Below the pieces are notes generated by a model, which saw only the letters and a program-made list of their open reading frames with translations, ran no database searches and was not told the origin of the DNA. Shown in pieces: positions 33,793-51,880 of a stretch of 64,000 bases of DNA. The first letter of the stretch is position 1. Every line of letters starts with the position of its first letter. A program made the position numbers and the translations under genes. The stretch is taken from contig OZ251229.1 in NCBI GenBank assembly GCA_965240325.2, forward strand, positions 1-64,000. The letters run 5' to 3'. The stretch comes from Rebecca billardiae RCC1528. Lineage: Eukaryota > Protista > Haptophyta.

Positions 33793-34296
33793 GGTCAGGT
33801 CGGTCGGTGGGCTCGCTCGCCGAAGGGCAGGCCGCAGGCGGCCGTGAAAGCGGCTCGGGCGGCGGTTTCAAGGCCCCGCGCAGCACTGGCGGACAGGGCC
33901 GCCGCGGGGTGCTTGATGACGAAAGCAAGCTTCATCAAGCGGGAATTACTTTAGGGAAAACCCCGGAAGTCCGACGAGGACCGACCGAGCAACCAGAACT
34001 CCGACAAACCTCCGCATCTCAGCACGGCGATTTCCGGACTGGCACCCCCGCCAGTTTTCCGACGGCCAGAAGCTTCGGGAGCGAGCAAATGGCGCCGCTC
34101 GCCCGCAACGCGGAAGATACCGCTCGCGGCGAACCGGCGCGAACGCCCGCCTTGTATTCGGGCGGAGTACCCTAATGAGCGGGGGTGGGTACTTTCGTAT
34201 TGCGCGCAGCCTGACGCCCACCCGCGACGAAACGACGCCGTCGACTCCTCCCGCCCGGACCGCCGCCGGAACGTTGCTCGTCAATTAGTTAGAGAA

Positions 34297-37200
34297 ATGC
34301 GACGCCGGGGGGCGCGCCGCAAAACTTGCTCCCGAGCTCGCCACGAGGGACGATCGATGCCTCGCACGACGTTAAGGGGGTACGCCTGCCACGCGCGCGG
34401 GCGTCGTGCGCGCGCCGCGTGGTCGCGCGCGGCGCATCGCGCGCGCGTGTGTCTTCGTTCGCGCGCGCGGCGTGCGCTCGCGCATGTCGTCACGCCGTGC
34501 GTTCTGCGTCGTTGCGCGGCGTCGTGCCCGCGTGCCGCGCGCAGGCCGCCGCCGCCTGCGGGGACGACTCCGACTGCGACGAGCTTCGCGAACGGGGCTG
34601 CTGTGGACGTGGTGTACGAGCAGGGTGCACCGGCAGTCCGTGCTGTGGTCGCGGCGCTTGGGGTCGGCGCACACGGGCGAGTGCAGACGTACGTCCTCCG
34701 GGCTGCCGAGGGAGTGTCTGCTCATGCGTGGGCTGCGGTCCCTGGCGACACCGTCGGTGCGTCCGCGGATGGAACAGTCGAGGGCGCAGGCTCGTTGAAG
34801 AGGGTGCCAGCGGCGCACGTGCGTGCGCCGCCCGCCGGCGAGCAGTGCGCCGAGCAGGGGCAGGGCGCCGAGCAGGGCGCCGAGCAGGGCGCCCTGCTCG
34901 GCGCCCTGCTCGGCGCCGAGCCGGGCGCCGAGCAGGGCAAGCAGGCCGCCGAGCAGGGCGCCGAGCCGGGCGCCGAGCCGGGCGCCGAGCAGGGCGCCGA
35001 GCAGGGCGCCCAGCCGGGCGCCGGGCAGGGCGCCGGGCAGGGCAAGCAGGCCGCCGAGCAGGGCGCCGAGCCGGGCGCCGAGCAGGGCGCCGAGCAGGGC
35101 AAGCAGGGCGCCCAGCCGGGCGCCGGGCCGGGCGCCGAGCCGGGCGCCGAGCAGGGCAAGCAGGCCGCCGAGCAGGGCGCCGAGCCGGGCGCCGAGCAGG
35201 GCGCCGAGCAGGGCGCCCAGCCGGGCGCCGGGCAGGGCGCCGGGCCGGGCGCCGGGCCGGGCGCCGAGCAGGGCAAGCAGGGCGCCGAGCAGGGCGCCGA
35301 GCAGGGCGCCGAGCAGGGCGCCCAGCCGGGCGCCGGGCATGGCAAGCAGGCCGCCGAGCAGGGCACCGAGCCGGGCGCCGAGCAGGGCGCCGAGCAGGGC
35401 GCCCAGCCGGGCGCCGAGCAGGGCGCCGAGCAGGGCGCCGACGGCCGGCCGGCCCGCCACGGCAGCACGCGCGTGGGCGGCGGCAGCTACGCCGCCCAGG
35501 GCATCCAGCAGGAGGCTGCGGGGCAGCGCGGCGCGCAGGGGGCGGCTCACCACAACGGGCGCGGCGGCGTGCGGACGCGGGCCATGCGCCGCCAGCCGCC
35601 ACTTGCGCCACCCGCCGAAGCGCTGCCCGGCGTCACCTCGGCGCCGGCGCCGCCGTCGGCGCCGACGGCGGTCGCAGGCGTCACGGCGGCGCCGGCGGCG
35701 CCGCCTGCGGCCGCCGGCGGCCCCGCGACAAGCGACGAACGCGCCGAGCCGCCACGCGCACCCGTCGCAACGCTGGCGCCGGCGCCGCCGCCGCCGCCGG
35801 CGCCGACGGCGGTCGCCGGCGTCACGGCGGCGCCGGCGGCGCCGCCTTCGGCCGCCGGCGGCCCCGCGACAAGCGACGAACGCGCCGAGCCGCCACGCGC
35901 ACCCGTCGAAACGCTGGCGGGTGCCACCGGCGTCACCGCGGCGGCGCCGGCGCCGCCGCCTGCGGCCGCCGGCGGCCCCGCGACGCGCGCCGAACGCGCC
36001 GAGCCGCCACGCGCACCCGCCGAGGCGCCGGCGGCTGCCACCGGCGTCACCGCGGCGGCGCCGGCGCCGCCGGCGCCGGCTGCGGCCGCCGACGGCCCCG
36101 CGGGCGTCAACTCAGATGACGCCGGTGGTGCTGCCTCGGGCGAGGTGGCACGGGCGGCGACGGCGTCGACCGCGACGCGCGCCGAACGCGCCGAGCCGCC
36201 ACGCGCACCCGCCGAGGCGCGGGCGGCTGCCACCGGCGTCACCGCGGCGGCGCCGGCGCCGCCGGCGCCGGCTGCGGCCGCCGACGGCCCCGCGGGCGTC
36301 AACTCAGATGACTCCGGTGGTGCTGCCTCGGGCGAGGTGGCACGGGCGGCGACGGCGTCGATGGGTGGAGCGGCGGCTGGCGCAGCGGGGTCGCACTCCC
36401 ATGCACCACAGCAGGCGCCCGCCGCCGCGCAACCCGGCGGTGGCGGCCACGCTGACGACGGCGGCGGCGTCTACGGCAGCGGCGACGGCGGCTCACGCGA
36501 GCTGTTCGCGATGAGCGATGTCTTGCAGCACGTGGATCATTTCTTCAGCGGCATCTACGGGAAACGCCGGAGGTTCGGCGGAGACACGCCCGCCGCGCCG
36601 GCGCAGGCGCACGCGCACGTGCTGGTGCGCCCCAGCGCGGTGGCGGATGCGGACGCGCGGACGACGAAGCACGGGCCGCAACCGAACAACGGCCGATTGG
36701 TGCCGGCCATCCTCAGGTTCAACCGCGCGTTCGCGTCACGGCATCTCGGCGGCGGCGGCGGCACGGTCCGCGTGGTGAACGTGGTGTGCGATGCCACGAA
36801 CAACAAGCACTTCGGCGTGCTCACGGATGCCGACGCTGTGCGCGAGCTGTGCGCCTCGGGCGCCTTGTACACGCGCAGCGAGGTGGACGATGCGGTGCGC
36901 GAGTTCTACGCCGGCGCCGCCGCGAGCGTCGGCGGCTCTGTCTCTGAGCTCGCCCTGCGCGCAGCAGGCGAGCACTTCGGTGTGCACGGCCCGTTGCCCT
37001 ACGTCCTCGACGCGGACGTGCGAGTCGCCTTAGCGGACGCTGAGGCCGACGACGATGGCGTCGCAGGCGGCGACGCGCCCTGGGTTCACCGGGCGCTTGC
37101 GTTGCCCTCGATGCGGCGCTCGGGACAGGCGGTGTTCGGCCTCCCCGCCGTGGTTGCACAGGCGCCCTCCTGGTGCGCGCTTGTGCCCACGCCGCTGCGG

Positions 37201-39440
37201 GCGCCCGCTGAGCAGGGGACGTCGCCTTTGCTGCACGCCGCCGTGGCCGTGGTGGACTACCGGTCCGTGGACACCGACGACACCGACGAGTCGGAGCCCG
37301 TCGTCGGCGCGCACGCGTACGCCATCCGCTTCGAGAAGGGCTGGCGCCTCCTCACCTTCGCCACGCGGCCGCCCAGTGGTGCGGCGGGCGCGATGACGGC
37401 TGCGACGTGCACGGACCTCACGGTCGACGCCTTCGCCGCCGCCGTCAGCCGGCGTGAGGTTGCTGCGTGCGAGCTGCAGTCAGCGCCGCCGCGGGCCATT
37501 GCGCCCCCCGTCCAGCACGCCGCCCCCGCGCTCCACGACTCGCCGCCCAGCCCGGACGAGACGGACGCGTTGCCGCCCCGCCCGCGCCGGGACGTGGTCC
37601 CGACGTCCACGGACGTGCTCATGGGCGCCTCCGCGGTGTGCAGCGCGCTCGGCATCGGGCCATGCCATTGGGCGCCCGATGGCGACCCGCCCGGGCTCAT
37701 GACGAACGCCGCGGCCATCGCGGAGGCGGCGCTCACGTACGTGCAGTCGAACTACGACGTGATTGGGGGCACGGCGGCGTCGGCGGACCTGCTGCACACG
37801 CTCCACCAGATCATGGTCGCCGGCCGCCCGCAGCGCTCGTTTGACAGGCCTCTCCCCCGGCCGGGCGGTGGGACGCGCGTGCGCGTCGCAGGCGTCGTCG
37901 GCGAGCTGCCCGTCCATGAACAAGAGCTGATGCTCGCCTCGAAGCACACGTGCGTCGCGGCGGCCATCGCGTGCGCCTCGGCGCTCGTGCTGCGCGTCAA
38001 GGCGGCACACCTGCGATACGACGCCCTCGCCGACGTCAGCGTGGGCGATGGTGCGTCCTTCGAGGCGGCGGACTACCTCACCAAGGTGCGCATCGTCAGC
38101 GCACGGCTCGTCGCGCCCGAGCGGAAGAAGCGGCTCACCTTCGAGCTCCTCGCCGTCTCCGAGGATAACGCCGGTGCTTACGACCGCGTGCTCAACGCCG
38201 ACACGAGCTCGCGGGCACTCCACCGGGACGAGGTGCTCGAGTTCACCTACGTGCCTTCGAAGACGCGCTCGTGGAAGTCGACGGAGGCGCTGTCAACGCA
38301 CAGCCGCGCGGCGGCCGGCGACGACGCCGACGCCGGCAACTTCGGCACGCTGTTCTTCGTCCCGCACATGCGCGACCCCGTGAAGGCAGCCGCCCTGGCG
38401 CGCCCGCCGCCTGCCGGGACGCCACCTGCCGCGCCGCCCGTGGGTGCGATTGTGGACTTTCGCCCCTTGTGCATCAGCGTGTGGGCTGACATCGTCCCGT
38501 TCTGCCAGGATCGGCTCTGGACGCACCCGGCGGACCCAGTCACCGGCAAAAGCAGCGGCGTGGACGCGCCGAAGATGTACGCCGCCGCGCTCCACAGGCG
38601 CGCGCCCTCGCTGGCGCGGCACGTACAGGCGGCGCCAGCGCGCAAGCGTCGCCTGAACGAACGCGGCGCCGACGCGGGCGGCGCGGGCGGCGCCGCCGGT
38701 GGGCGTGTGGTGGCGCGCCGGCCGGTCGGCGACCCGGGCCGCGTCGCCGTCACACGGCCATCCGCCGTCGCGCGCGCACCCGGGCCACCCGAACAGGCGA
38801 CGCGCATGTGCACCGAGCTCGCTGCGGCCCACGCCCAGCTCGCTGAGATGGTGCACGGCATCCCCAACGCAATGGCACAAGCGATCGGACAACTCGCTGC
38901 GAACGACGCCAAGCGCCAGAAGGACTACGAGGCCTGGCGCGCGGCGGACGACGAGCGGCGCCGGCAGGAGCGCGCGGCGGACGAGGCCTGGCGCCAGCAG
39001 GAGCGCGCGGAGGCGGCGCGCCGACGCGACGAGGATCGCGCGGCCGCAATGAAACGTGACGAGATCGCGAGCGCGATGGTGGCGTCTATGCAGGCGTTGA
39101 CGCAGTTCATGATGGACCGCAGCGCAGGTGGCGCACAGCCCGGCCCGCACGCGTCGGCGCACGCGGCGTGCGTCCAGCTGCCAACAGGCGAAGCACCGCA
39201 CGGCGCGCACGCCCCGGCTGCGGGCCCGTCGGTGAGCGCTGCGTCCGCTGCGCCCACGTCGCGCGCACCCACGGCACGGCGTGGCGCGCCGCCGCCGGTC
39301 GCATTCGGCCAGCGCGCGCGGCGCCGAGTGCCGCCCCCTGACTCGCGTGTGCCCGCCAGGCCGCTGCACTGTCGCTCCGTGCGCCGGCCGCGCAGGCCGA
39401 CGAAGCCCCCGCGGGCCAGCCCCCGCCGGCCGCGCAGTAG
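34297..39440 (+). CDS. MULE second (accessory) gene, ~1,600 aa, unknown function; predicted introns 34380-34544 and 39232-39359 (unspliced ORF runs to 39996)
   Basis: 1899-codon ORF starting inside the left TIR; GAEQ repeat, Pro/Ala repeats, globular-looking core at ~36500-38600, basic ARKRR motif, C-terminal coiled coil. Confidence 0.7.
34849..35439 (+). repeat. Coding minisatellite, 12-bp ggcgccgagcag ([11 protein letters not shown])
   Basis: Direct reading; frame preserved throughout. Confidence 0.95.
35620..36362 (+). repeat. Coding internal duplications (~120-bp units and a 192-bp unit)
   Basis: ERAEPPRAP occurs four times; 35978-36169 is repeated at 36170-36361. Confidence 0.85.
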
Positions 39441-39992
39441 ACGCCGACCCACAAGGGCGCGTCCTGACGTGCCCACGCGCCGCCCACAGGTGCGCGCACA
39501 CACCACATCGGGCGGCGCCAGCCGTGCGCACGCCGAGCGGCGTGTACGCGCAGCCCTGGCTCAGTCGCGCCCGACCGCCCCCGTGCGCGCGCGCGCGTCG
39601 CGGTGGCGTGCACAGGCTGCGCGCCACCCGGGGCGGCCACGCGGGTGGCCGCCACCGCTGGCAGCATCTGGCCACGAGCTCGGCACCCGGGGTGCCGGCG
39701 GAGTGGCTCGTCGGAATCGCCGTGGCCTGAGCCCGGTTCTCCGAGCACACGGCCACAGGCACCCCCCCGGCCAGCGCCTCTGCGCCACTCGCAGTGACGG
39801 CGCCACAAGGGCCTACGGCGGGGCCCGCCGAGAAGGTCTTAGCGCAGGTCTTAGCGGGATGCAAGCAGCGCCACGCGCGACAACACTGATACACGCCGCC
39901 GGGGGCCCACACTGTGCCGGCCCGTGCTATGTCGTCGTCAGCTCGGACGCAGGCCGGCCGGCCGGTGCCGTGAGTCGGCGCCTGTCGTTCTG

Positions 39993-42900
39993 TTAGCTGG
40001 CACCTGGCGTGCTCAGGCGGCGTGGTGCGCACTCAACGTACCCCTGCAAGGGTGATGTAGCTCGCATGAAGTGCGCCAGACGCCCCTCGTTGTTGTCGCG
40101 CGCCGAACGCGCCTCCAGGGGCGCCGTCGCCGACACCACCGCGCCGAAGTGGCAACGGCCGTCGTACACCACGGCCATCCACGTCGTGCCCAACTGCGTG
40201 ACGTCCAGACGCTGCAAGGCGCGCCGCGTGCGCTCGTCACGCAGGCGCAGGTGCGCATGCGTGCTCACGGCGACGCTGCCCTTGCGCCCGCCGTCGTCAG
40301 TCCGCCGCCAGCGAAGGCCCGGCCGCGTCTGCACGGGGTAGAACCAGACGTTGTCGGTGAACGCGCGCCACGCCGCCTCCTCCGGCGTAGCCCCGCCGCG
40401 CAGCTCAAGGACCACCAGCGGCAGGCCCGTGGCGCGCGCCGTCGCGACGTGCGAGCCCCACGCCGACCACGCACCAGCGCGCGCCGCATGCGCGCCAGCG
40501 CCGTCGCCCGTGTACCGGGCGCCGCGCGCGTACGCGCGCGCCGCTGCTCCCAGCGTCCGCACGCCTCCAGTATGTCGCAGTGGCAGTGGCAGCACCTCCT
40601 GCCAGTCCTCGTCCTGCACTTCGAGTCCTTGGCCGGTGCGGGCCCGGGGGATGGATGCTGGCTTGACGCCAAGCATGCCGAGCGCGCTTGCCGCCGACGC
40701 CGTGGCCGACGCCGTGCCGAGCGTCTCGCCCGGTCCGTGCTCGTCCTCCCACGACGCGATGTACGAGCACACGCCGTCGCGCAGCGTCTGCGCGCGCGCG
40801 TTGGCGGCGGGCAGGTCGGCCCGCACGCCACGCGTGTCGTGCGCGAGCCACGCGTGAAAGTAGCAGTCGCCATCGCCGGGAACGTCCTGCACGCTCGTGC
40901 CGCCGCCGAAGAGCTCGCGGATGGCCGCGGCGACGTTGCCGTCGCCATCCACGCCGCCGGGTGCTCCGGTCTGTGCACCAGCCCGCGCCTCGGGCGGCAA
41001 CGCCGGCGGCAGGGGCAGCACGGGGAAGCCCAGGCGCTCGAGCAGGACCGCGGCGTCGTCCACCGGCGCGTGCACGTGTGCGGCGGCCGCCGGAGCCACC
41101 GCAGCCGGCGCAGCCCCGTGCCCGGCGGGCGCCGGCGCCGCCGCACCCGCGTCCACGGTGGCGTCCGTCGCCGCCGCGGCGCGCGGCGCGGCTGCGCCGC
41201 GTGGCGCGGCATCACCCGCCGTCACGTCAGCGCGGCATCGCTCCGCCGTCACGTCAGCGGCGGTCTCGCCCAAGGCCAGGCGCAGCCCCAAGCCCACGTC
41301 GCACCGCCATGCCCCGTCGGAGCCGTCGAGAGGGACCACCTCGGTGCCGAACGCGCTCGGGTCCAGCGCATCCACCTCGCACCCGCGCCGCCTGGACGCC
41401 AGCCTCACGTGCGCGTCCGCAGCCGGCTGGAACGCACTCCAGCGCGACGCCGGCAACACCCCGTGCGCGCGCGGGGTGGCCTGCGGCGCAACCACTGCGT
41501 AGAACTGCCGGCGAGGACACACGTTGCGCACGATGGCCACCCAGCCGGTGCCCATCGCCCCGACGTCGAGCGTGCGCAGGACGCGTGCGTGCGTCTCGCG
41601 TCCCAGGCTCAGGCGCGCTTCGCACAGCGGACGTGCGTCCGCGTGCGCGGCGCCTGCGTCGGGCGTGTCGGCGCGCCGGCGCTTCGCGCCGGCGCCCCCG
41701 CGAGCGCGTGGCGCCGCCGGCGCCGGCGGCACGCGCACTGCCGTCGGAGGATACCACCGCACGTGCTCACGCATGGCGACGCCGTGCACGTCGCGAGCTC
41801 GGCGTGCGTAGGCCATGTCGAAGACGAGGAGGTGCACGCCGGCGGCGCGAGCGACTGCCGCGTACCACTCAGGGCCATCGCACGTGTTGCCCGGGCTGCT
41901 GACGTACCCGTCGCACGTGTACTCCGCCGCTCGCACTGCCAGCGTCACTGCGTCGTCCAGATCGCGCACGCCCTGGCCGGGGGTGTGCCACGACGACGAG
42001 TCGTCGGGGGCCACCATGCGCAGAGCCCGCAAACGCGCCTGCCCAGCTTCGTCGCCACCTGCGCTCTCCGGGGGAAGTGCGCGCACGTCAGCGCCGCACA
42101 AGCCGATGAAGCGCGCCTGCGCTCGCAGGTCCTCTGCCGACTCGGCCGGGCCCAGCGCGCCACCCCAGCCGACGGAGTGCTCGGTGGGCGTGGCATGCGC
42201 GTGCGCGGCCAGCCACGACGCGGCCGCCGCGCGCAGGCGCCGCGCGCAGCACGCCCACCACAGGGCCTCAAGCGTGCTGGGCGGACGCGCCCGCGCGTGC
42301 GCGTGCGCGAGCACCGCGTGCAGCACGTCGTCACCGTCGGCTGGCACGGGCAACGGCTGTGCGGCGCCCGCGCCCCAGAGGTCGTCGAGCACTGCCTGGG
42401 CGCAGCAGAGCCGTAATCGGGCGAATTCGGCGTCGTGGTCGTCTGCGCCGGCGGCGGCGTCGGCGGCGTGGAACAGGCGCACCGGCGCGTGGCGGTCATC
42501 GCCCGCGGCGCGCGCTCCAGCGTCGCGCACCGGCAGACCAGTGCGCGCCAAGTGGGCGACCGCGTCGTCCGCGGTGGCGACGGCTGTGTCGTCCGCGGCA
42601 CCAGACGTGCCACGCGCCGTCCCCAGCAGGTCGGCGCCTGCGCGCGTTGGGCCCGGCGTCGGCACCGACCGCGCCGCCGACGATGGCCCCGCCGTGGACG
42701 CGCGGGCGCCCGCCGCCTGGCGCGAAGCCGGCGGCAGGCGCCCATCCGCGGCCGCACCGCCCGCGTCGTCGGCGGCGGCCGCAGTCCGAGGGCGCTTGGG
42801 CGCGCACGGCGCAGACGCGGCCCCCGCGCCCGCGCGGGAGGTGCCAGCCGCGGCGCCCGCCTGGCCTGCGGCGCCTGCGCCCGCGCCGCCGCCGCCAGCC

Positions 42901-45900
42901 AGGACGTCCGCCAGGCCCGCCGCCGCCGCCGCGACGTCGTGTGCGCCTGCGTGCGCCCACACGTGGGAGGCCGCGTTCGGAGCGGCGCCGCCCGAGCCCC
43001 TCGCGCCGCCACTGCCCTCGGCGGGCACGGCGGGCGACGCGTGCGCGCGCGCCAGCTCGGCGGGGGCGGCGGCGGCGCGCGCAAACTGTGCCAGCACCTT
43101 GCCCGTCGTCGCGCTGGACGCGCCGAATGCGTCACCGGCCGTCTCGCTGAGCGTGGGCCACGGTGCTGACAGGCCGCGACTGCACATGAACATGGCTGCC
43201 CTGCCCCGACCGATGCCAGGTATGCGCCGCAACGCCGCGAGCACTGCGGCGCTGTCGTCAGCGAGGCGCGCGTACGCCGACTCGGACTCCGCCGCCTCCG
43301 CCGGTGGCTCTGCCGCGCCCGCGCGCGCCCGAGGGACTCGCGCACCCGGTGGCGGTGGCGCGTGGGCGCCGGGCCACGGGGGGCGGAAGGGATGCTCAGT
43401 CGCCGCCAGCGGTACTGTGTCGCCCGTGGCCGGCAGCGGCTCCGCGGCGTGCGCGCGCGCGCGCGCGGCGGGCGTCGTGCCGGCGTCCGCGCCACTGCGC
43501 GGGCCCGTCGTGCCCTCAGGCGGTGCGGCCGGCCGCTGCGTGGCGGCGTTTGGCATCGGTGCCGTCGCGAAGCCCATGCGTACGCCGGTGCCGCCAAGTG
43601 CCTGCGAGGCGATCGCGCGCGCGCAGTGCCGGCGCGGGCCGCCGCGCGCGCCCGCGCCCGCCGCGGCGGCGCCGTCGCGCGTCTGGGCGGCCGCCGGCTG
43701 CGCGCGCCCGGGCGCGGGCGCCGCCGCGCCGCGGCCCCCGCGGCCGCCTGCGCGGCCCCCGCGCGCGCCTGCGGTGCGCGCGGGGTCGCCGCGCGCGGCC
43801 CCACCGCCGTGCTGTCCGCGCATACGGTGGTATGGCACGTCCTCCGGCCTCGCGCCGCGCGGCCCGTCGGGCGCCGCCGCCTCGCCCGCCGCGGCTGCGC
43901 GCGCTTCGCGCAGGCGCTTCCACGCCCCCGCGACGAGCAGGAAGTAGCAGCACGTGCACATGTACAGCCCGCTGTCCAGCGCGCCGAGGTGCCACACATA
44001 CTTGCACTGCGCGGGCGAGTGGATGAAGCAGGCGCAGCCCTGGCACGCCAGTCGGGGGTCGATCGGCGGCGAGTCCGCCGGCCACGCCGCGCTGAGGTCC
44101 GCGGCCTCGGGGTCGAAACACGCGCAGCAGCGCAGTTGCGCGGCGGCGGTCGTGCCGGCCGTGTACGTGGCAAAGTGGCGACGTCGCTGGTTCGCAACCA
44201 CACCCTCGCGGAGCGGGCCGGCCACGCGCACGAGCACGTTAGTGTCGTCGAGCACGTGCGTGTGCGCGATGCCGTACAGGTGCTCCGGCAGCCCCTCGAG
44301 CACACGCGCGAGCTCGTCGCGGTGCGCTTCGCGCACGCGCCGGGCGAAGTCGCCGTCCGGGGCTTGCTCCCTCAAGGGGCGCACGTACGACGCCGCGGAT
44401 TTGCCCAACTGCACGCGCGGCGCGCGCGCGCGCGGTGCGCGCGGGTGGCGCGCCCCGGCGCGGCCCTCCCAGAACGCCAGCCGTCGCGCCGAGGACGCGG
44501 GCCTGCCCACGCGCGCGGGCACCGCTGGCATGGCCACGTACTTTTCGAGCAGGGCGCGCTTGGCGAGAGCGGGCAGCAGCAGAGCCGCAATGGCGTCCTC
44601 CAGGCGCTGGGGCGGTGTGATGACGTCGAGCTTGGTGATGGCCACGACGCGCCCGAGCGTGTCCACCCGGGTGTCGTGTGCGTCGCGCTCGACCCGAAGG
44701 CCCACCTGCGCGAACCACGTCTCGCAGCGCAGGTCCTGGGGCAAGCACGTGCCCATGGCACGGCCGACGGAGGTCGCCACGCGGCAGAAGTGCATGCACG
44801 GCAGGCGCTTGCGGCGCAGCAACGCGCAGCACCGGAACTCGTCGAGGTACACGTGGCGCGGCGCCGAGCCGTCCGTGGTGTTGAGCATGCGCAGGGCACC
44901 TGCGTGCGGCCCGTCGAGGACACGGTGCACTTCCACCTGAGAGAGCGTGCGCGCCGTGCTCACCTGCTGGCGCACGTATTCCAGGTGCCGTGGCGGCAAC
45001 CCGTGCACCTCATCATCGGCGTCGGGCTTCAGGGCGTGGCGCACGGCGACGCTGCGGTGCGTCGCGTAGAGGCGAAAGAGGTTGTCGTGCAGGTCGAGCA
45101 GCATCCACACCGGGCCCTGCGCCTTGCGCACCGGCAGCAGCCAGTGCATGAAGGACTCCGCCGGCGCGGACGTCACGTAGCCGCGCAGGGACACCGGCGC
45201 GAAGCACGGGAAGAGCTCCTCGCGGGGGATGACGTCGAGGATGCGCTTGGCCGACTCTGGCATCTCCACCCAGGCGGCCTCCCACACCTCCTCGGTCAAC
45301 GCGTCCACGCACGCGTCGAACACGCGCAGGATGGTGGGCACCTCGTTCGCCGAGTGTGCGTAGCCCGTGATGAAGGTCTGGCGCTTGTGGAACGTGCACA
45401 GGAAGAGGTGCCTGCGCGGGCACAGCAGCTTCCACGCGCCGCGCAGGCCCTTCTGGCCGTCCGAGATGGTGACGCCGTTGGGGTCGTCCCACACAGCCGC
45501 CCCGCCGAGGTGCTGCATGAGGTATCCGACGTGCGCGCACCACGAGTCCAGGCACTCCACGTCGACGATGTACGACACGCACAAGACGAACAGCTGCCGG
45601 TTGGCGTTCACGGCCAGCGTGACGAAGAGCATGCCTGCGTCGCGCGCGTGCGTGCGCGCGGGCAGGTCAGACGGGCGGGCGCTGAGGCGGCACGGACGCA
45701 CGCGGCGTCGCGAGGGCGTGCCCGGGTGCGGCGGGCGCGCGCACCCGCGCGCTTCGCGCCACCGCTGGCGGGGCGGTGCAGGAAGCACGCGTCGCTGAAC
45801 GCGGCCGTGTTGCCCTTCGCGTGAAAGTGCTCGCGGTAAAGCGCCTTGGCCTGCTTGGGCACGTAGTGGAAGCCACCCACTGCCTTCTTGCCGCGCACGT

Positions 45901-48900
45901 CAGCCAGCGCCTTCTGCACCTCCGCCGCGTCGGGGTTGAAGGCCGCGCGCTGCGCGCCCGCCGGCAGCCCCTGCTGCACCTCGTCGTGCACGCGGCCGAA
46001 CATGGCCAGCAGCGCGTCCTCGACCGAGTTCTCGTGGAAGATGATGGGCGCGACCTCGTTGCCCTCCTGCGACAGCGACGCGCACACGGCCACGAGGTCG
46101 CGCGACATGGCCGTGTCGTCCCCGTAGATCTCGGCGCGCGCTTCTTTGTGCGCTCGCGCGATGAGCGATTCACCCATGGGGAGCTCTGCGTCCAGCTGGC
46201 GCGCGACCTCTCGTGCTTGCTGCGGGCCGTAGCACAGCTGCGCGTGCGTGGTCCCGCGCCGGGCCAAGCGCGCCTTCCAGTCCTCGACGATCGCCCGCCC
46301 GAGCTCGTGTTGGGAGTACGGCGTCGTGCGCACGCCCGGCTGGTTGGTCGGGCGCGGCAGCGAGCCGATGGGGTGTTCCTCGGACCCCTTGCCCATGCGC
46401 AGGTTGCGGCACATGGAGCCGTGCGCGACCGAGCGTTGCACGGCCCACGGCGGCGCGCCAAACGTGTCCACGTACTTCGACGGGCCCACCACCACCACGG
46501 ACGGGCACCCGGGCGTGGGGCATCCGATCGTCAGCTTGGCGCGGTCGACGCGCCGCGTCGGCGGCATGGCCCCCCGGTGCAGCGCGCACTCCGAGGCGTG
46601 CGTGAGCGCGTCGGCGAGGCGCGGGTACACCTGGCGCACCATCGGGGGCTCGAGCAGGGTGGCGTCCGCCTTCACCTGGGAGTACGGGCGCGGCGCCCGC
46701 AAGCCCATTTTCCTCCACAGTGCCAGGGGCCGGAGCTCGAGGCGGTGCGCTGCCGCCGACGTGCTCGCCGAGGTGCTCGACGGCGCGGAGTAGCGGAAGT
46801 ACCCGGCGTCACCGCCGTGGTGCAGCGACTCCGGCGCAACAAGCCGGGCGCCGGCCTGGCCGGCGCGGGGCTCGGCGGGACCGGTGGAGGGCGGCTGCGC
46901 GCGAGCGACGATGGGTGGACACGGCATGAGGGCAGCCAGCGGGTCGCGCGCGCGAGCGGCGTCGCTGTCGGCGGACTCGTCCGCCTGCAGTGCCGCCTGC
47001 GCCGCGCGCGCGCGGGCGTCCGCGCAGTCGTCGTCCGCGATGCCCTCCTCCCAGTCGCGCACGTCGATGGCGGCACTGGCGGGATCGGCGTCCGTGACGA
47101 GCGGCTCGCCGCGGGCGTCGGACTCGCCGACGCGCATCGTCGGCCAGTCCGCGCTCAGGGCGAACAGCGGCGCGTTGCCGCGGGCGGCCGCCGTCGTGTG
47201 CGTCCTATGGCCCACGGACGCGTCGACGAGGGGCACTCCACCGCGCGCCCATGCGGGCGCCGACTTCTCCGTCGCCAACGCGTCGGCAAGGTGGCCACCG
47301 AGGTGGGCACGCTGGCCGGCGTGCAGGGCCAGGGCGAGGTCCCCGCCGGACAAGAGGCCACCTGCGTGCGGCAGCGCAGGGAGGGCCCTCAGCCGCGCGT
47401 CGTCGTCGTCATTGCCGCCGTCGCCACCGGAGGCGCCGCGCGGCTGCGGCGGCGCGCGCGAGGCGCAGCCGGGCGGCTGCGCGATCACCGCGCGCGCGCT
47501 GCTGCTGTCGAGGGGCGGCCCCGCCGGGTGGAGTGGCGGGCGCGCCGTCGCGGCGCACACAGCAGCGCCGGGCACCGTCACCGCGACGCAGGGCACGGCG
47601 TCGCCCGCAGCGCAGGGTGCGCCCGGCGCTGGCGTTGCCACGCGAGCGGGCGAAGAGTGCCCATCGCCAGGCCGCGGCGACGCGGGCTCGTGCGCGCCCG
47701 GCGCGTCCGAGCTCGAGCTTTGGCGGGCGCCGGTGTGCCGCAGCGGGGCGGACGCTGCGTCGGGGCGACGCACGGCCGTGGGCGCGCGCGGCCCGACAGC
47801 CGGGTCGTCAACGCCATCGGCGCGTGGGGGCCGCGCGCCCTCGTCAAAGGGGGCGCCCACGTGCGCGCCCGTGCCGTGCGCGGCCGCGGCGGTGGGCGCG
47901 CGCCCACCGCCGTCGGCGTGAGGCGCGGGGTGGCCGCCCGCAAGCCCCACGACGTGGGGCACGGCAGGCGCCGCTGCGCGCTCATGTGCGAGCTGCGCGC
48001 CGTCGGCAGCGCACACGGGCAGCGCCAGCTGCAGCGCCGACTGCGCCCAGGCCCGCTGCTCGTGGTCCGACGGCGCCTGCTGGCCGTGCGCCGCGGTCGG
48101 CAGGTCGACCACCAGGCGGGAGACGTACTCGTGGTGCGCAGGCGAGCCGAGCCGGAAGCGGGCGTCAGCGCCAGCGCGCGTGGGCTCAGCCCCCCAGCGC
48201 AGCCTGGTCTCAAACGAGTGCTGGAGCCCGCGCTCGAGGGCGGGCACGAGCCGATACGGCGTGGGAGGCGGGTCGGAGCGCGCCGCGCACGGCGTGGCGG
48301 CGGGGCGAGGCGCGCTCGGCGGCGGCGTGAACGAAGCGCGGAATGTGTCCGCGAGGCCCCGCCCCCCGAATGAGAACACAGCCTTCAGGACGAGCGCGTC
48401 CGCCGCACCCTGACGCGTAGGCCTCTTGCGCGAGGACGACGGCACGGACCCCGAGGACGCGGCGCGCGCACTGGGGGCCGAGCGGTGATGCCACATGGCG
48501 GGGAAGATGTGCACTGCACCTGCGCTTTCCTGCAGGGCAACGTCGCCGTGCAGCGGCACGGCGTCGGCGCGCGCACCGGGGGGGCGCGCGCCGACCGTCT
48601 GCAGCGGGAAGGGATTGGTGGGCACACTTTGCGGCAAGTGCAAGAGGACCACTGCCGTCCACAGATGGTCCTCGTCGGTCGTGCCGTCGACGTGCCACCC
48701 GTACGTCGTGACGTCGCCGTCGTCGCACGTGCCGCGGCCCCCGTCGGGCGGACGCATCGGCCGCCCGAAGACATGCCAGGCCGTGAGGTCGAGCGCGTCG
48801 AGGCCGCGGACACCGTCAGAGGCGTCGCCGCGGAACAACGAGCTCACGACGCCCTTCAGCGCCGCCACCACGCGCTCAAAGGCGCGGCACCCCAGCACCG

Positions 48901-51376
48901 AGCGCGCAGAGGAGCCGTGGTCGCCCACCCCCCAGCGCCGCTGCGCGGCCGCCTCGCCGCCCGCGTCCGCGGACTGGTACGCGTGCACCGTGCGCAGGAG
49001 GCCGCCACCCTCATCCAGCAAGGGCATGGACGCATCGCCGTCCCCGCCGAGGCCTGCGTGCTGCAGCACGTACTCGCGCAACGGGCCAACCAGCACGCCC
49101 ATGTCCATGTCCAAACGCTGCGGTGCCGCAGCGGCGGCACCAAACGCGGCCTGCAGCGCGCGCCCAACCGCGGCGTTATGCGCGAGCATGTCGTCGAGGC
49201 TGGGCGCGGGCGCCGCCGCAGGCGTCGGCGCCAGCGCGTCGCCCAGCGGCGGCTCGCCTGCAGGCGGCAGCGCGCGCGGCACCACCACGGCGGAGGCAGG
49301 GCGCATCGCGCCCGACGCCGCGCTCGTCACCTCGTCGCGCCACGGCGCAGCGGCGCCCACGACAGCGTGCGCACCGCACAGCGTCAGCACCAGCGTCACT
49401 GGCGGCTGCGAGACGGCCGCGCCGGCCACGAGGGCCTGCGCGAAGGTGGCGTCGAGCAAGGGGTGCAGACGCGCGCCCTCGCCGACGTGCACCAGCGCGG
49501 GCGCGAGCGGGATGACCACTGCCCACACGGTGCGCTCGGCGATGGTGGAGGCGGCCCGCAGCAACGGCCGCGCCAGCCACCCTTCGCGCAGCGAGCCGTC
49601 CTCGCACGCGGCCACAAAGGCCGCAAGACCGGCGTGGCCGTCGGCGACCACGGCAGCACGCAGCCTGACGGCGGCTGCGCGCACGGCGGCGTCACGTCCA
49701 GCGGCGGCGCCGGACGTGGCAGCGCGCGGCGCTCCATCTGCCGCCACCCCTTCGCCGGCCCCCACGACGGCCTGCGAGACGGCGCCGAGCCACGCCAAGC
49801 GGGCGCTCTCGAGTTCCGCACGCAGCTGCTGGTCGCGCCAGCGTGCCTGCTCAGCCGACGCGGGAACGAACGCGCGCGGCTGCGCCGGCACGGGCGCGCA
49901 GAGCGCGCGTACGGCAGCGTACGCCTGCGTGCGCAGCTCCGCCGCTCGCGCACGCAGCGCGTCCGCGCAGAGGCTGCTGCGGCCTGCTGGCCACGACGCC
50001 ACGCGCTCGAAGGCGACGAACAGAGGCTCGGACTGGCCAGCGTCCGCGCCGAAGACGGCGCGCGCGTAGTACATCACCGCCTCGGACGGGCATGACAGCG
50101 GCGGGCACGGGGGGGGCGCGCCCGTCCAAGCGCCCGACGGCGCCGCCGCCGCCGCCGTCGTCGCCGGGAGCACGTCGTCGACGCCTCCGCCAGTCCCAGC
50201 ACCTGGGCGGGCATCCGGACGGGGGGCGCACAACGCCGCCAGAGCCAGCTTCGTCCGGAACGGAGCGGCGGCCCAGGCCGCACGCACTGCCCACGCGCAT
50301 GCGCCCTGCGCGTGCTCAGCGGCGCGTGCGTGCTGCCCTGGGGTCGGCGCCGAGGACGACGGCGACAGCGACTCCGCGCCACCCGAGCGGCGCGCGTGGG
50401 ACGTGCCTGCGGGCGGCGGCGCCGGTTTCCCTCCGAGCGCCGCTGCGGACGCCGTCAGTCGCGCCGTCTCCGCGAAACTGCCCTCCTCCGCCAGAGCCCC
50501 GTCGGCGGAAGCACCACAGGCAGCGCGCACGGCGATCTGCGCGACGGCCCTGAACCAAAGGGCCGCCGCGCACACGCGCGCCACCGAGTCCGCGCGCTCA
50601 CGCAGCGCGTCCGGGTGCGAAGCCAACAACTCCGCACACTCCACCACAGTGAGCAGCGCGTCGGCGCCGCTGCCACCCCATACGCGCGGCACTGTGACCT
50701 GCGCAGCGGCGGCGCCAAGGCCCACGTCGGTGCTGTGGACCACGCCGAGGGTGCACAGCACCAGACCAAAGGTGAACGTCCACGGGGCTGCTGCCGAGGA
50801 GAACTGCAGCGTGCACAACGCGTCGTCAGCCGCTGCGATCACCGCGTCCACGAGCAGCAGGTCGTCCTGACTGCTGGGGCCGGCGGACACATGCCGCATG
50901 CCCGCCTGCGCGGTACGTGCCAGCACGTGCGGCGGAGAGGCAAACGCAGGCGCGCGCGAGCACACACACGGGGCACATCGTCAGACAGGGGACGGGGGCG
51001 CATGGGAGTGGTGCTGTGTGCGCGCGCGCGGCGGCGCACGCCACCAACATCGCTGCCGACCACACACACCCGCCCCGGCCCACCGCGACCTCGCACCATT
51101 CACGAATCACGAGTGCGACTTGCCTGCTCGTCGCGGCCGGCGACCGTCGACGCCTCAGACCGACTCGGATGCGAGAAGGGGGAACTCCTGCGAGGGGAGG
51201 CCGCAGGGAACAAGAACGGTCGGTGCGTGTGCGCGATGCGCCGCGCGCGACCGCGCGGCGCGCGCACGACGCCCGCGCGCGTGGAAGGCGTACCCCCTTA
51301 ACGTCGTGCTCACGCCCAGCCCTCCCTCGTGGCGAGCTCGGGAGCAAGTTTTGCGGCGCGCCCCCCGGCGTCGCAT
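39993..51376 (-). CDS. Multidomain MULE transposase, predicted ~3,650 aa (exons 51294-51376, 51124-51187, 45745-50905, 39993-45634)
   Basis: MuDR ZnF CPTPGC...HGSMC; spliced FSDACFL..GMLFVTLAVNANRQ; ISDGQKGL...HLFLCTFH; TSAPAESF (Glu); SWIM CC..LPCMH; PHD-like C/H pattern; HhH IPGIG; OTU PGDGDC...HFGA; 2OG-Fe(II) WHVD...IFP..HHRS. Confidence 0.85.
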
Positions 51377-51880
51377 TTCTCTAACTAATTGACGAGCAAC
51401 GTTCCGGCGGCGGTCCGGGCGGGAGGAGTCGACGGCGTCGTTTCGTCGCGGGTGGGCGTCAGGCTGCGCGCAATACGAAAGTACCCACCCCCGCTCATTA
51501 GGGTACTCCGCCCGAATACAAGGCGGGCGTTCGCGCCGGTTCGCCGCGAGCGGTATCTTCCGCGTTGCGGGCGAGCGGCGCCATTTGCTCGCTCCCGAAG
51601 CTTCTGGCCGTCGGAAAACTGGCGGGGGTGCCAGTCCGGAAATCGCCGTGCTGAGATGCGGAGGTTTGTCGGAGTTCTGGTTGCTCGGTCGGTCCTCGTC
51701 GGACTTCCGGAGGATTCCCAAGAAACAAGTAAACAAGGCCCGGCCTCCATCTCTCCTCCGCCGTGCGCGCCAATCGTCGGCGTAGCTCTCGGCCTCGCGG
51801 CGGCACCGGGATCCCCCGCCCGCTGCTGCTCGCGGCGGCCGCGCGCGCGAGGGCGCGGGGCGGCGGCGCGCGGCGGCGGC

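Follow-up and report, generated by a model that had tools for sequence, protein, structure and literature searches.

A very large transposable element lies at positions 33,954 to 51,719 of a 64,000-nucleotide (nt) stretch of DNA from the haptophyte Rebecca billardiae RCC1528 (contig OZ251229.1, positions 1 to 64,000 of the forward strand; "the window" below means this whole stretch), and our computational analysis suggests that it is probably a young, structurally intact autonomous Mutator DNA transposon whose giant transposase carries an OTU protease. The element region has a guanine plus cytosine (GC) content of 70-85% and is bounded by inverted-repeat arms (33954-34350 and 51323-51719) that are 397 nt long and 99% complementary. 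Past 13 unmatched bases the inverted repeat resumes for another 84 nt at 95% complementarity (34364-34447 and 51226-51309), giving terminal inverted repeats (TIRs) of ~494 bp at 95-99% identity and a whole element of 17,766 bp. The terminal 32-mer is found at both element ends and nowhere else in the window (0 expected). Mutator-like elements (MULEs) typically have TIRs of about 100-500 bp, and the ~494-bp repeats are of the long kind that serves as a Mutator criterion. Between the repeats stand three long open reading frames (ORFs), two on the minus strand (ORF1 and ORF2) and one on the plus strand (ORF3) that runs towards them. An earlier note on this DNA, made by a model from the letters alone, had described a giant autonomous MULE, 17.8 kb long, with near-identical ~495-bp TIRs, and both the repeats and the spliced DDE transposase frame described below agree with it. 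The features discussed in this text are collected in the table.

Table. Features of the element, in window coordinates.
Feature	Position	Strand	Remarks
Left TIR	33954..34447	+	397 nt at 99% and 84 nt at 95%, with a 13-nt unmatched gap; termini GGGAA..CCGGAAGTCC
Right TIR	51226..51719	-	Inverted-repeat match; terminal 32-mer
ORF1	45608-50965	-	1785 amino acids (aa)
ORF2	39993-45788	-	1931 aa
ORF3	34297-39996	+	1899 aa; convergent to ORF1 and ORF2
Transposase gene, upstream exon (part of ORF1)	45745..50965	-	First ATG at 50899; first catalytic Asp (D1) at 45793-45791; layout: ~600 aa at the N terminus, then the candidate oxygenase region, a low-complexity linker and the N-terminal zinc finger ahead of that Asp
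Intron	45635..45744	-	110-nt GT-AG, phase 1, 16 codons past the first catalytic Asp
Transposase gene, downstream exon (part of ORF2)	39993..45634	-	Open up to the stop codon at 39993-39995
Cys..Cys...His..Cys motif (CPTPGC...HGSMC)	46346..46558	-	At the place of a MuDR/WRKY-GCM1-type finger; pattern only
MULE DDE core	44682..45800	-	D1 45793-45791; D2 45461-45459 (SDGQKG); CxxH 45398-45387; E 45158-45156
SWIM-like finger	44780..44840	-	CC..x9..PCxH; aligned to relatives with a Pfam SWIM match at E ~1e-3
Clade-conserved Cys/His zinc finger (PHD in the earlier note)	43914..44156	-	12 invariant columns; faint IBR/ZBR likeness
OTU-type cysteine protease domain	40104..40916	-	Cys1642 40865-40863 in VPGDGDCYFH; WG motif near 40472; His1880 40151-40149
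Candidate 2OG-Fe(II) oxygenase core	48341..48763	-	His758-x-Asp760 48694-48686; His826 48490-48488; unconfirmed
Ala/Gly/Arg/Pro-rich stretch	42500..43880	-	Without codon periodicity, more than one open frame; holds the HhH-like motif
Candidate inactive OTU-like region	41349..42401	-	DGDD replaces DGDC; weak

The minus-strand transposase gene

The length of an ORF alone proves little in this region because stops are rare and several frames stay open at 70-85% GC, and we therefore used codon-position GC, comparing third positions (GC3) with second positions (GC2), as the coding test. GC3 greatly exceeds GC2 in the frame of ORF1 from 50962 to about 45743 and then in the frame of ORF2 to about 43823, the switch of frame falling exactly at an intron whose minus-strand sequence (45744..45635) starts with GTGCGC and ends with ACGCAG. 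Beyond a flat stretch that is weighed below, periodicity resumes at ~42500 and continues to the stop at 39993, in the same frame as before. The intron length (110 nt, 2 mod 3) equals the frame offset of ORF1 versus ORF2 exactly, and the spliced frame comprises 3,620 codons with no internal stop (3,598 codons when counted from the first ATG). The first catalytic Asp (FSDACF, ORF1 residue 1725) lies upstream of the splice, and ORF2 contributes the second Asp and the Glu; as the two ORFs are in different frames, an active enzyme needs the join.

The best indication of splicing comes from comparative sequence, namely an intron position that appears to be common to distant relatives. In three metagenomic relatives that share 28-31% identity, a GT...AG intron occupies the position of the window intron (L001, 2540-2675; L003, 2965-3105; L005, 3320-3433), in each case after the conserved DAAHLRRG.GHGYKGG. 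The L003 intron has internal stops, the L001 intron shifts the reading frame and the L005 intron is stop-free and in frame; phase 1 was traced directly in L001 and in the window. Being stop-free and in frame, the L005 intron was read straight through by the ORF caller. The claim of the earlier note that an intron at 45635-45744 follows the first catalytic Asp is thus backed by the frame offset, the periodicity switch and the same position in three relatives, and its proposal that the two minus-strand ORFs form one ~3,650-aa protein agrees with the single open spliced frame.

Judged by its sequence, the spliced protein truly belongs to the Mutator superfamily of transposases, in a clade that is rare and deep. 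An exhaustive phmmer/HMMER search with ORF2 residues 40-1239 against 1.84 billion representative proteins yielded only 16 homologues (E 1e-4 to 5e-29), all over the first ~330 query residues and originating from metagenomes among other sources, the nearest of which share 28-31% identity. Several of these homologues are at or near the Pfam thresholds for MULE, Transposase_mut and SWIM, and three exceed Pfam cut-offs (P0014 with 49.2 bits, P0011 with 30.3 and P0010 with 25.5 for Transposase_mut). Because homologues reach the MULE and Transposase_mut profiles, the window protein is placed in Mutator as well. D1725, D110 (SDGQKG), C131-x2-H134 and E211 are invariant or aligned in alignments A1 and A2, the invariant positions being the second Asp with its KG, the C-x2-H, the Glu and one Arg, and the catalytic spacing in the spliced frame is D-74-D-101-E. 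A DDE triad with C/D-x2-H after the second Asp was reportedly put forward as MULE-defining by Yuan and Wessler in 2011.

The SWIM-like CC-x9-PCxH (ORF2 residues 320-333) aligns with the fingers of P0011 and P0014; the window's own copy has no Pfam match. According to tblastn against the relatives' contigs, the core that they share with it spans ORF1 residues ~1595-1757 and ORF2 residues ~42-617 and consists of a pre-DDE segment, the DDE domain, the SWIM-like finger and a Cys-rich finger. Among themselves the relatives keep about 1,100 aa of coding sequence, at 58-66% GC, and everything outside this core appears to be lineage-specific, as far as the relatives' short contigs show. The DDE core named in the earlier note is accordingly well founded (homologues, invariant D-D-E and CxxH), and its SWIM finger is supported as a SWIM-like one by alignment with relatives. 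Its MuDR zinc finger fared less evenly, as a Cys..Cys...His..Cys pattern is indeed present at the expected place but Pfam is blank for the motif at 46346..46558. The relatives carry Cys-rich N-terminal segments upstream of DDE in alignment A1.

The OTU domain, further proposed modules and the convergent gene

The C-terminal domain is very likely an OTU-type cysteine protease with an intact predicted Cys/His pair. Its Cys loop, VPGDGDCYFH (residues 1636-1645), has a composition-based chance expectation of about 1e-4 in the 5,615 residues of the three ORFs. The two top matches of a PDB sequence search are the active sites of nairovirus OTUs (E 0.12), and a Pfam search with a tight 76-aa piece returned OTU at E 0.16, the second of two weak matches next to an unrelated family at E 0.15. 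The Atlas language-model feature search placed the domain with OTU clusters of giant viruses and haptophytes (0.92, 174-177 shared features), above the same-family bar. In addition, we gathered 43 viral OTU-type proteins by their Cys loop alone and aligned the domain with the 32 non-redundant ones using MAFFT (alignment A3), which places the LR helix, the WG motif (AWSAWG..GLPLVVL) and His1880 (GRCHFGAVV) in conserved columns, the His1880 column being nearly invariant. An AlphaFold model built with A3 has a mean predicted local distance difference test (pLDDT) of 58.5, with a core at 70-91 and the Cys-loop motif followed by a helix at 83-88. Almost all of the top 50 Foldseek matches of this model in the PDB are named OTU-family deubiquitinases, the best being OTUD3 (4bou; E 1.9e-4, probability 1.00, TM 0.70). 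A word-based homologue search with the OTU piece was blank, as was the search for related loci in viral contigs. The intact OTU of the earlier note thus finds support in the Cys loop, the His and WG columns, the Atlas match and an OTU-like, partly circular model.

Two giant-virus metagenome contigs (L006 and L009) encode small OTU proteins in which a long helical insert separates the Cys loop from the WG motif, at a spacing that resembles that of the window OTU. These proteins end in a lysine/proline-rich repeat tail (PSPPKKVQK; RRTQR in L009).

The remaining modules that had been proposed for this protein proved less substantial. The odds are about even that the candidate region in the N-terminal half is a 2-oxoglutarate (2OG)-Fe(II) oxygenase. 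The candidate combines H758-x-D760 with H826 (a 66-residue HxD...H spacing) and K862, plausibly spaced for an iron triad and a distal 2OG-binding residue but in a pattern too loose to be significant alone, and sits in a stretch of strong coding periodicity. The Atlas search with ORF1 residues 600-900 gave 0.92 with 150 shared features, below the same-family bar of 170, and the named matches are nearly all 2OG-FeII_Oxy_3 (PF13640) or related, that is, prolyl-hydroxylase-like and not TET/JBP, AlkB or JmjC. As the lead is of the protein-hydroxylase type, nothing links the oxygenase candidate to silencing marks. Pfam was blank, even for the 141-aa core at E up to 10, and so were PHROGs, NCBIfam, the PDB sequence search and a phage tblastn. 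The candidate has no relatives in viral contigs or in the word-based protein search, a phmmer search against 1,025 ORFs of giant-virus contigs returned nothing, and a single-sequence AlphaFold model of the piece is unusable (pLDDT 33). What stands of the oxygenase claim is the language-model lead and the HxD...H spacing, against which every profile, PDB and tblastn search was blank.

The zinc finger that the earlier note took for a PHD is a different motif. Eleven of its 12 invariant columns are Cys or His, in the pattern CCxC..Cx2CxCx2Hx4C..Cx2C, which is of the H-x4-C type; Pfam PHD has no match in six clade members, and the best PDB matches of the finger's profile are weak ones to the IBR-like ZBR of FBXO43 (E 0.014) and FBXO5 (E 0.1). 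Its conservation indicates that the finger is part of the clade's transposase and not an added histone reader. The helix-hairpin-helix (HhH)-like motif LRRIPGIGRGRAAMF (43089-43286, minus strand) is readable but stays below the Pfam threshold (HHH, PF00633; E 0.13, 12.6 bits versus a cut-off of 24) and lies within the stretch that has no coding signature. For the proposed degenerate OTU there is a language-model lead (Atlas 0.88, with 45 of 100 matches in OTU clusters, recognition being below the bar), but BLASTP finds no similarity to the intact OTU, and Pfam, PHROGs and NCBIfam are blank. A further OTU-like region, which had been suggested with a question mark at the N terminus, receives no support from Pfam, PHROGs or NCBIfam. 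Whole-ORF scans gave no Pfam matches and only noise in PHROGs and NCBIfam, the word-based homologue search with ORF2 was blank, and the ATG-started ORF2 product has no exact match on record in public assemblies. Ala-rich words probably swamped the three word-based searches that were blank, those with ORF2 and with the oxygenase and OTU pieces.

In ORF3, the convergent ORF on the plus strand, a clear coding signature is present only at 34840-35600, which is a 12-nt repeat, and at 36400-39200, where about 930 codons show it clearly before the ORF continues for about 800 nt without it. Pfam, PHROGs and NCBIfam are blank for ORF3, with no family match. The 12-nt minisatellite occupies 34766-35440 with about 46 in-register copies that encode repeats of the G-A-E/P-Q-G type, with occasional 9- and 21-nt steps, and parts of it are mutually inverted (GCCCTGCTCGGC versus GCCGAGCAGGGC). 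It is followed at 35639-36361 by tandem repeats of 141 and 192 nt, neighbours being 96-99% alike, with an Ala/Pro-rich product; codon periodicity is flat there and the frame is still open. At 39993-39996 the convergent stops overlap in TTAG, the plus-strand ORF ending in TAG and the minus-strand one in TAA.

Outside the TIRs (33941-33953 and 51720-51738) the flanks are AT-rich in a 75% GC genome (ATTACTTTA and AAGAAACAAGTAAACAAGG). The layout is ATTACTTTA, element, AAGAAACAAGTAAAC, and both flanks have TTACTT in common, in inverted orientation. Such flanks may represent an outer end of the element that has degenerated, or they may reflect an AT-rich target preference; the true termini are definable only from other copies of the element, and a comparison of the three ORFs with the window by tblastn and BLASTP gave no second copy in it. 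Excision of the element restoring one flanking ORF was considered and set aside, as the flanking minus-strand ORFs are in different frames. A bacterial or viral origin of the element was likewise rejected, in view of the spliceosomal introns of the relatives, the host-like GC3 bias and the transposon-like TIR structure.

Interpretation and alternatives

In the reading that we prefer, that of a young and intact autonomous Mutator transposon with an OTU-bearing giant transposase, the clade would be a rare and deeply divergent one in intron-bearing microbial eukaryotes, and removal of the single conserved intron would give the main gene an open frame of about 3,600 codons. The conserved core (ORF1 residue ~1595 to ORF2 residue ~617), with its zinc finger, D-D-E with CxxH, SWIM-like finger and IBR-like finger, would bind the ~494-bp TIRs and perform cut-and-paste transposition. 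Lineage-specific additions would be attached to this core via long low-complexity linkers, possibly a prolyl-hydroxylase-like oxygenase in the N-terminal half and, at the C-terminus, the predicted OTU-type cysteine protease. Working as the Ulp1 and OTU domains of other transposases are held to do (PMC2836005, PMC9741609), the OTU may take ubiquitin or a ubiquitin-like modifier off the transposase, or off host proteins where the element leaves or enters the DNA, or alternatively it may cut the giant product into working pieces. The second, convergent gene would encode an accessory protein; mudrB and VANB/VANC are companion genes of other MULEs.

Several observations weigh against this reading. 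At the ends of the element, we found no target-site duplication (TSD): direct repeats of 8-11 bp (≤1 mismatch) do not occur in the ±25 bp around each end, and none appeared when offsets up to ±40 bp were searched; the best candidate is a 7/9 match at offsets that leave non-inverted ends. The TSDs of MULEs normally measure 8-11 bp, and the missing one conflicts with TIRs that look young. The window protein itself matches Pfam MULE (PF10551) with E 0.0033 and 18.3 bits, below the cut-off of 27.6, and its OTU domain matches Pfam OTU (PF02338) with 12.9 bits versus a cut-off of 23.3, at profile positions 1-43 only. A home-made hidden Markov model of the viral OTUs matches the Cys loop and the next helix only, with the rest no better than shuffles, and the same holds for a Smith-Waterman comparison of the part after the Cys loop with six viral OTUs. 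The OTU fold test is, moreover, partly circular, as the alignment rows given to the modelling are true OTUs. Most of the domains listed in the earlier note were not recovered in profile searches, a check that it had itself named.

The remaining points concern the unity and integrity of the genes. Periodicity is flat at 43880-42500 (ORF2 residues ~636-1095), where a second minus-strand frame is open, and the OTU part could be a separate gene or exon set. The first ~500 nt and the last ~800 nt of ORF3 have no coding signature, and in these stretches the long intact convergent genes of the earlier note are less secure than it states. Beside the relatives' cores, on contigs of 5-6 kb, there is no Pfam match and no OTU or oxygenase. 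One public run of unspecified kind holds 38-43% of sampled words, and none of its contigs (200-430 nt, depth 2-5) lies over 45664-45860 or shows a splice joint; these contigs neither support nor refute splicing.

An alternative is that there is no single protein at all: the transposase would stop after the Cys-rich finger, with the N-terminal half and the OTU being host sequence that the element captured, or genes of their own. Of the alternatives this one survives best, and we still regard it as unlikely. The N-terminal half and the OTU region might be open merely through the rarity of stops at 75-85% GC, several frames are open across 41.9-44.3 kb, the relatives show the core only, the read contigs contain no splice joint and MULEs are known to capture host fragments (PMC6431247). 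However, a large excess of GC3 over GC2 marks the ORF frame almost throughout 50962-43823 and reappears at 42560-39993 in the frame used before the flat stretch, and the other frames hold stops in the periodic parts. Furthermore, the 3,620 codons are open even though an estimated ~1.4% of random codons of this base composition are stops, and the Cys and His of the OTU are intact.

Less probable again is that the OTU is mainly a processing protease, which would cut a ~3,600-residue polyprotein at its disordered linkers in the manner of RNA-virus polyproteins. Such a function would suit a product in which globular parts are set apart by low-complexity linkers of 300-500 residues and in which the conserved core of the relatives amounts to no more than about 1,100 aa. 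Viral OTUs within large viral proteins are also among the closest matches in sequence and fold, and viral deubiquitinases often process polyproteins as well (PMC9741609). On the other hand, we identified no cleavage-site motif, ubiquitin and ISG15 are the substrates of the matched nairovirus OTUs, and the Ulp1 and OTU domains of other transposases are generally held to act on modifiers (PMC2836005). Polyprotein processing is compatible with our preferred reading of the element, and if the OTU does cut its own product, the element would be the first among cut-and-paste DNA transposons to be made as a self-processing polyprotein.

We consider it improbable, by a small step more, that a single product combines a protein-hydroxylase oxygenase and an OTU deubiquitinase on a Mutator transposase, acting on host proteins or as a self-processing polyprotein. 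The host targets of such tethered modules may be, for example, ubiquitinated histones, repair factors or silencing factors, and a tethered oxygenase and OTU, if true, would make a self-contained anti-defence transposase. Least plausible of all is the chromatin toolkit of the earlier note, in which a reader finger, an oxygenase eraser, HhH and a deubiquitinase held at the TIRs strip silencing marks or prepare target chromatin: it can draw on the supported OTU domain, on the language-model oxygenase lead with its 66-residue HxD...H spacing and on VANC in VANDAL, SET in Phytophthora MuDR and TET/JBP in fungal DNA transposons (PMC12730594), but the oxygenase is blank in Pfam, PHROGs, NCBIfam, PDB and tblastn, has an unusable fold model, falls short of the Atlas bar (150 features against 170) and is prolyl-hydroxylase-like with no tie to DNA or histone marks, the supposed PHD is a finger of the transposase core kept in relatives without the other modules, and the HhH is sub-threshold in a stretch with no coding signal. 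An anti-silencing function of this element is conjecture. Taken together, the giant young Mutator transposon is real and an OTU protease is probably fused to its transposase; the self-encoded chromatin-modifying toolkit, as stated, is not supported.

Comparison with known systems

Cut-and-paste transposases are usually smaller than about 1,000 residues. At 17.8 kb and with a frame of 3,600 codons, this young MULE stretches the usual limits on both transposase size and element length. Cut-and-paste mobilisation is thought to be less efficient beyond a few kilobases (PMC6431247). The clade is nearly unsampled, with 16 relatives among 1.84 billion proteins, and its conserved intron argues that it is an old eukaryotic lineage. 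The metagenomic members (P0001-P0007, L001-L005) resemble the window element in the pre-DDE segment, the DDE domain, the SWIM-like and Cys-rich fingers and the intron position, and differ from it in spanning only ~1,100 aa, in a GC content of 58-66% and in 5-6-kb contigs without OTU or oxygenase.

Among described elements, two kinds of fusion have been known since 2010 (PMC2836005): Ulp1 and PHD on Mutator transposases, and an OTU or Ulp1 at the C-terminus of Ginger1 transposases. The Ulp1-carrying Mutator elements, namely KI-MULEs and their kin in Arabidopsis, melon, rice, maize, hydra and lancelet, some of them with PHD (PMC2836005), share with the window element the long TIRs and a Mutator transposase that has a papain-like cysteine protease of the ubiquitin or ubiquitin-like system and a Cys-rich finger. 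In contrast to them, the window protease is an OTU, the finger is not a PHD, the frame has ~3,600 codons and the element 17.8 kb, and the transposase clade is very distant, with 28-31% identity to its nearest known relatives. Ginger1 (PMC2836005) is likewise a TIR-bounded cut-and-paste element with a DDE transposase and a C-terminal OTU-like protease; it differs from the window element in its Gypsy-integrase-type DDE and its length of 2.6-7 kb.

Transposons that encode a protein acting on their own epigenetic state are known as a concept from VANC (VANDAL), SET (Phytophthora MuDR/Harbinger) and TET/JBP (fungal) (PMC12730594). The window element is like them as a DNA transposon with accessory protein domains in that conceptual sense, but it has no confirmed DNA-methylation or histone-mark domain, and the published factors are mostly separate genes. 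Our search of the published literature found no Mutator transposase with OTU, with a 2OG oxygenase or of this size, and a survey of MULEs across eukaryotes mentions neither haptophytes nor proteases. The proposal that the combination is new among MULEs holds in so far as no Mutator-OTU or Mutator-oxygenase was found in the literature, and is tempered by the published Ulp1 and PHD Mutators and the OTU-bearing Ginger1. A confirmed oxygenase would add a new enzyme to the known partners of DDE transposases.

Helitron-like elements carry an OTU, a VTD deubiquitinase and an AlkB-like 2OG domain (PMC11417382, PMC9741609), and the Helitron/Helentron group (PMC9741609, PMC11417382, PMC6431247) resembles the window element in its very long protein (over 1,500-2,000 aa) and its deubiquitinase-type accessory domains. 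An oxygenase domain is recurrent in one Helitron-like group, where it is the AlkB-like 2OG-FeII_Oxy_2, whereas the unconfirmed lead in the window is PF13640 and prolyl-hydroxylase-like; unlike the DDE element, Helitrons also use rolling-circle Rep/helicase chemistry. The activity of transposon-encoded OTU domains is untested (PMC9741609). If the OTU is indeed part of the giant transposase, Mutator would join Ginger1 and Helitron as superfamilies that independently recruited an OTU protease, and such recurrent recruitment argues that control over ubiquitin-type modification is a general need of mobile elements.

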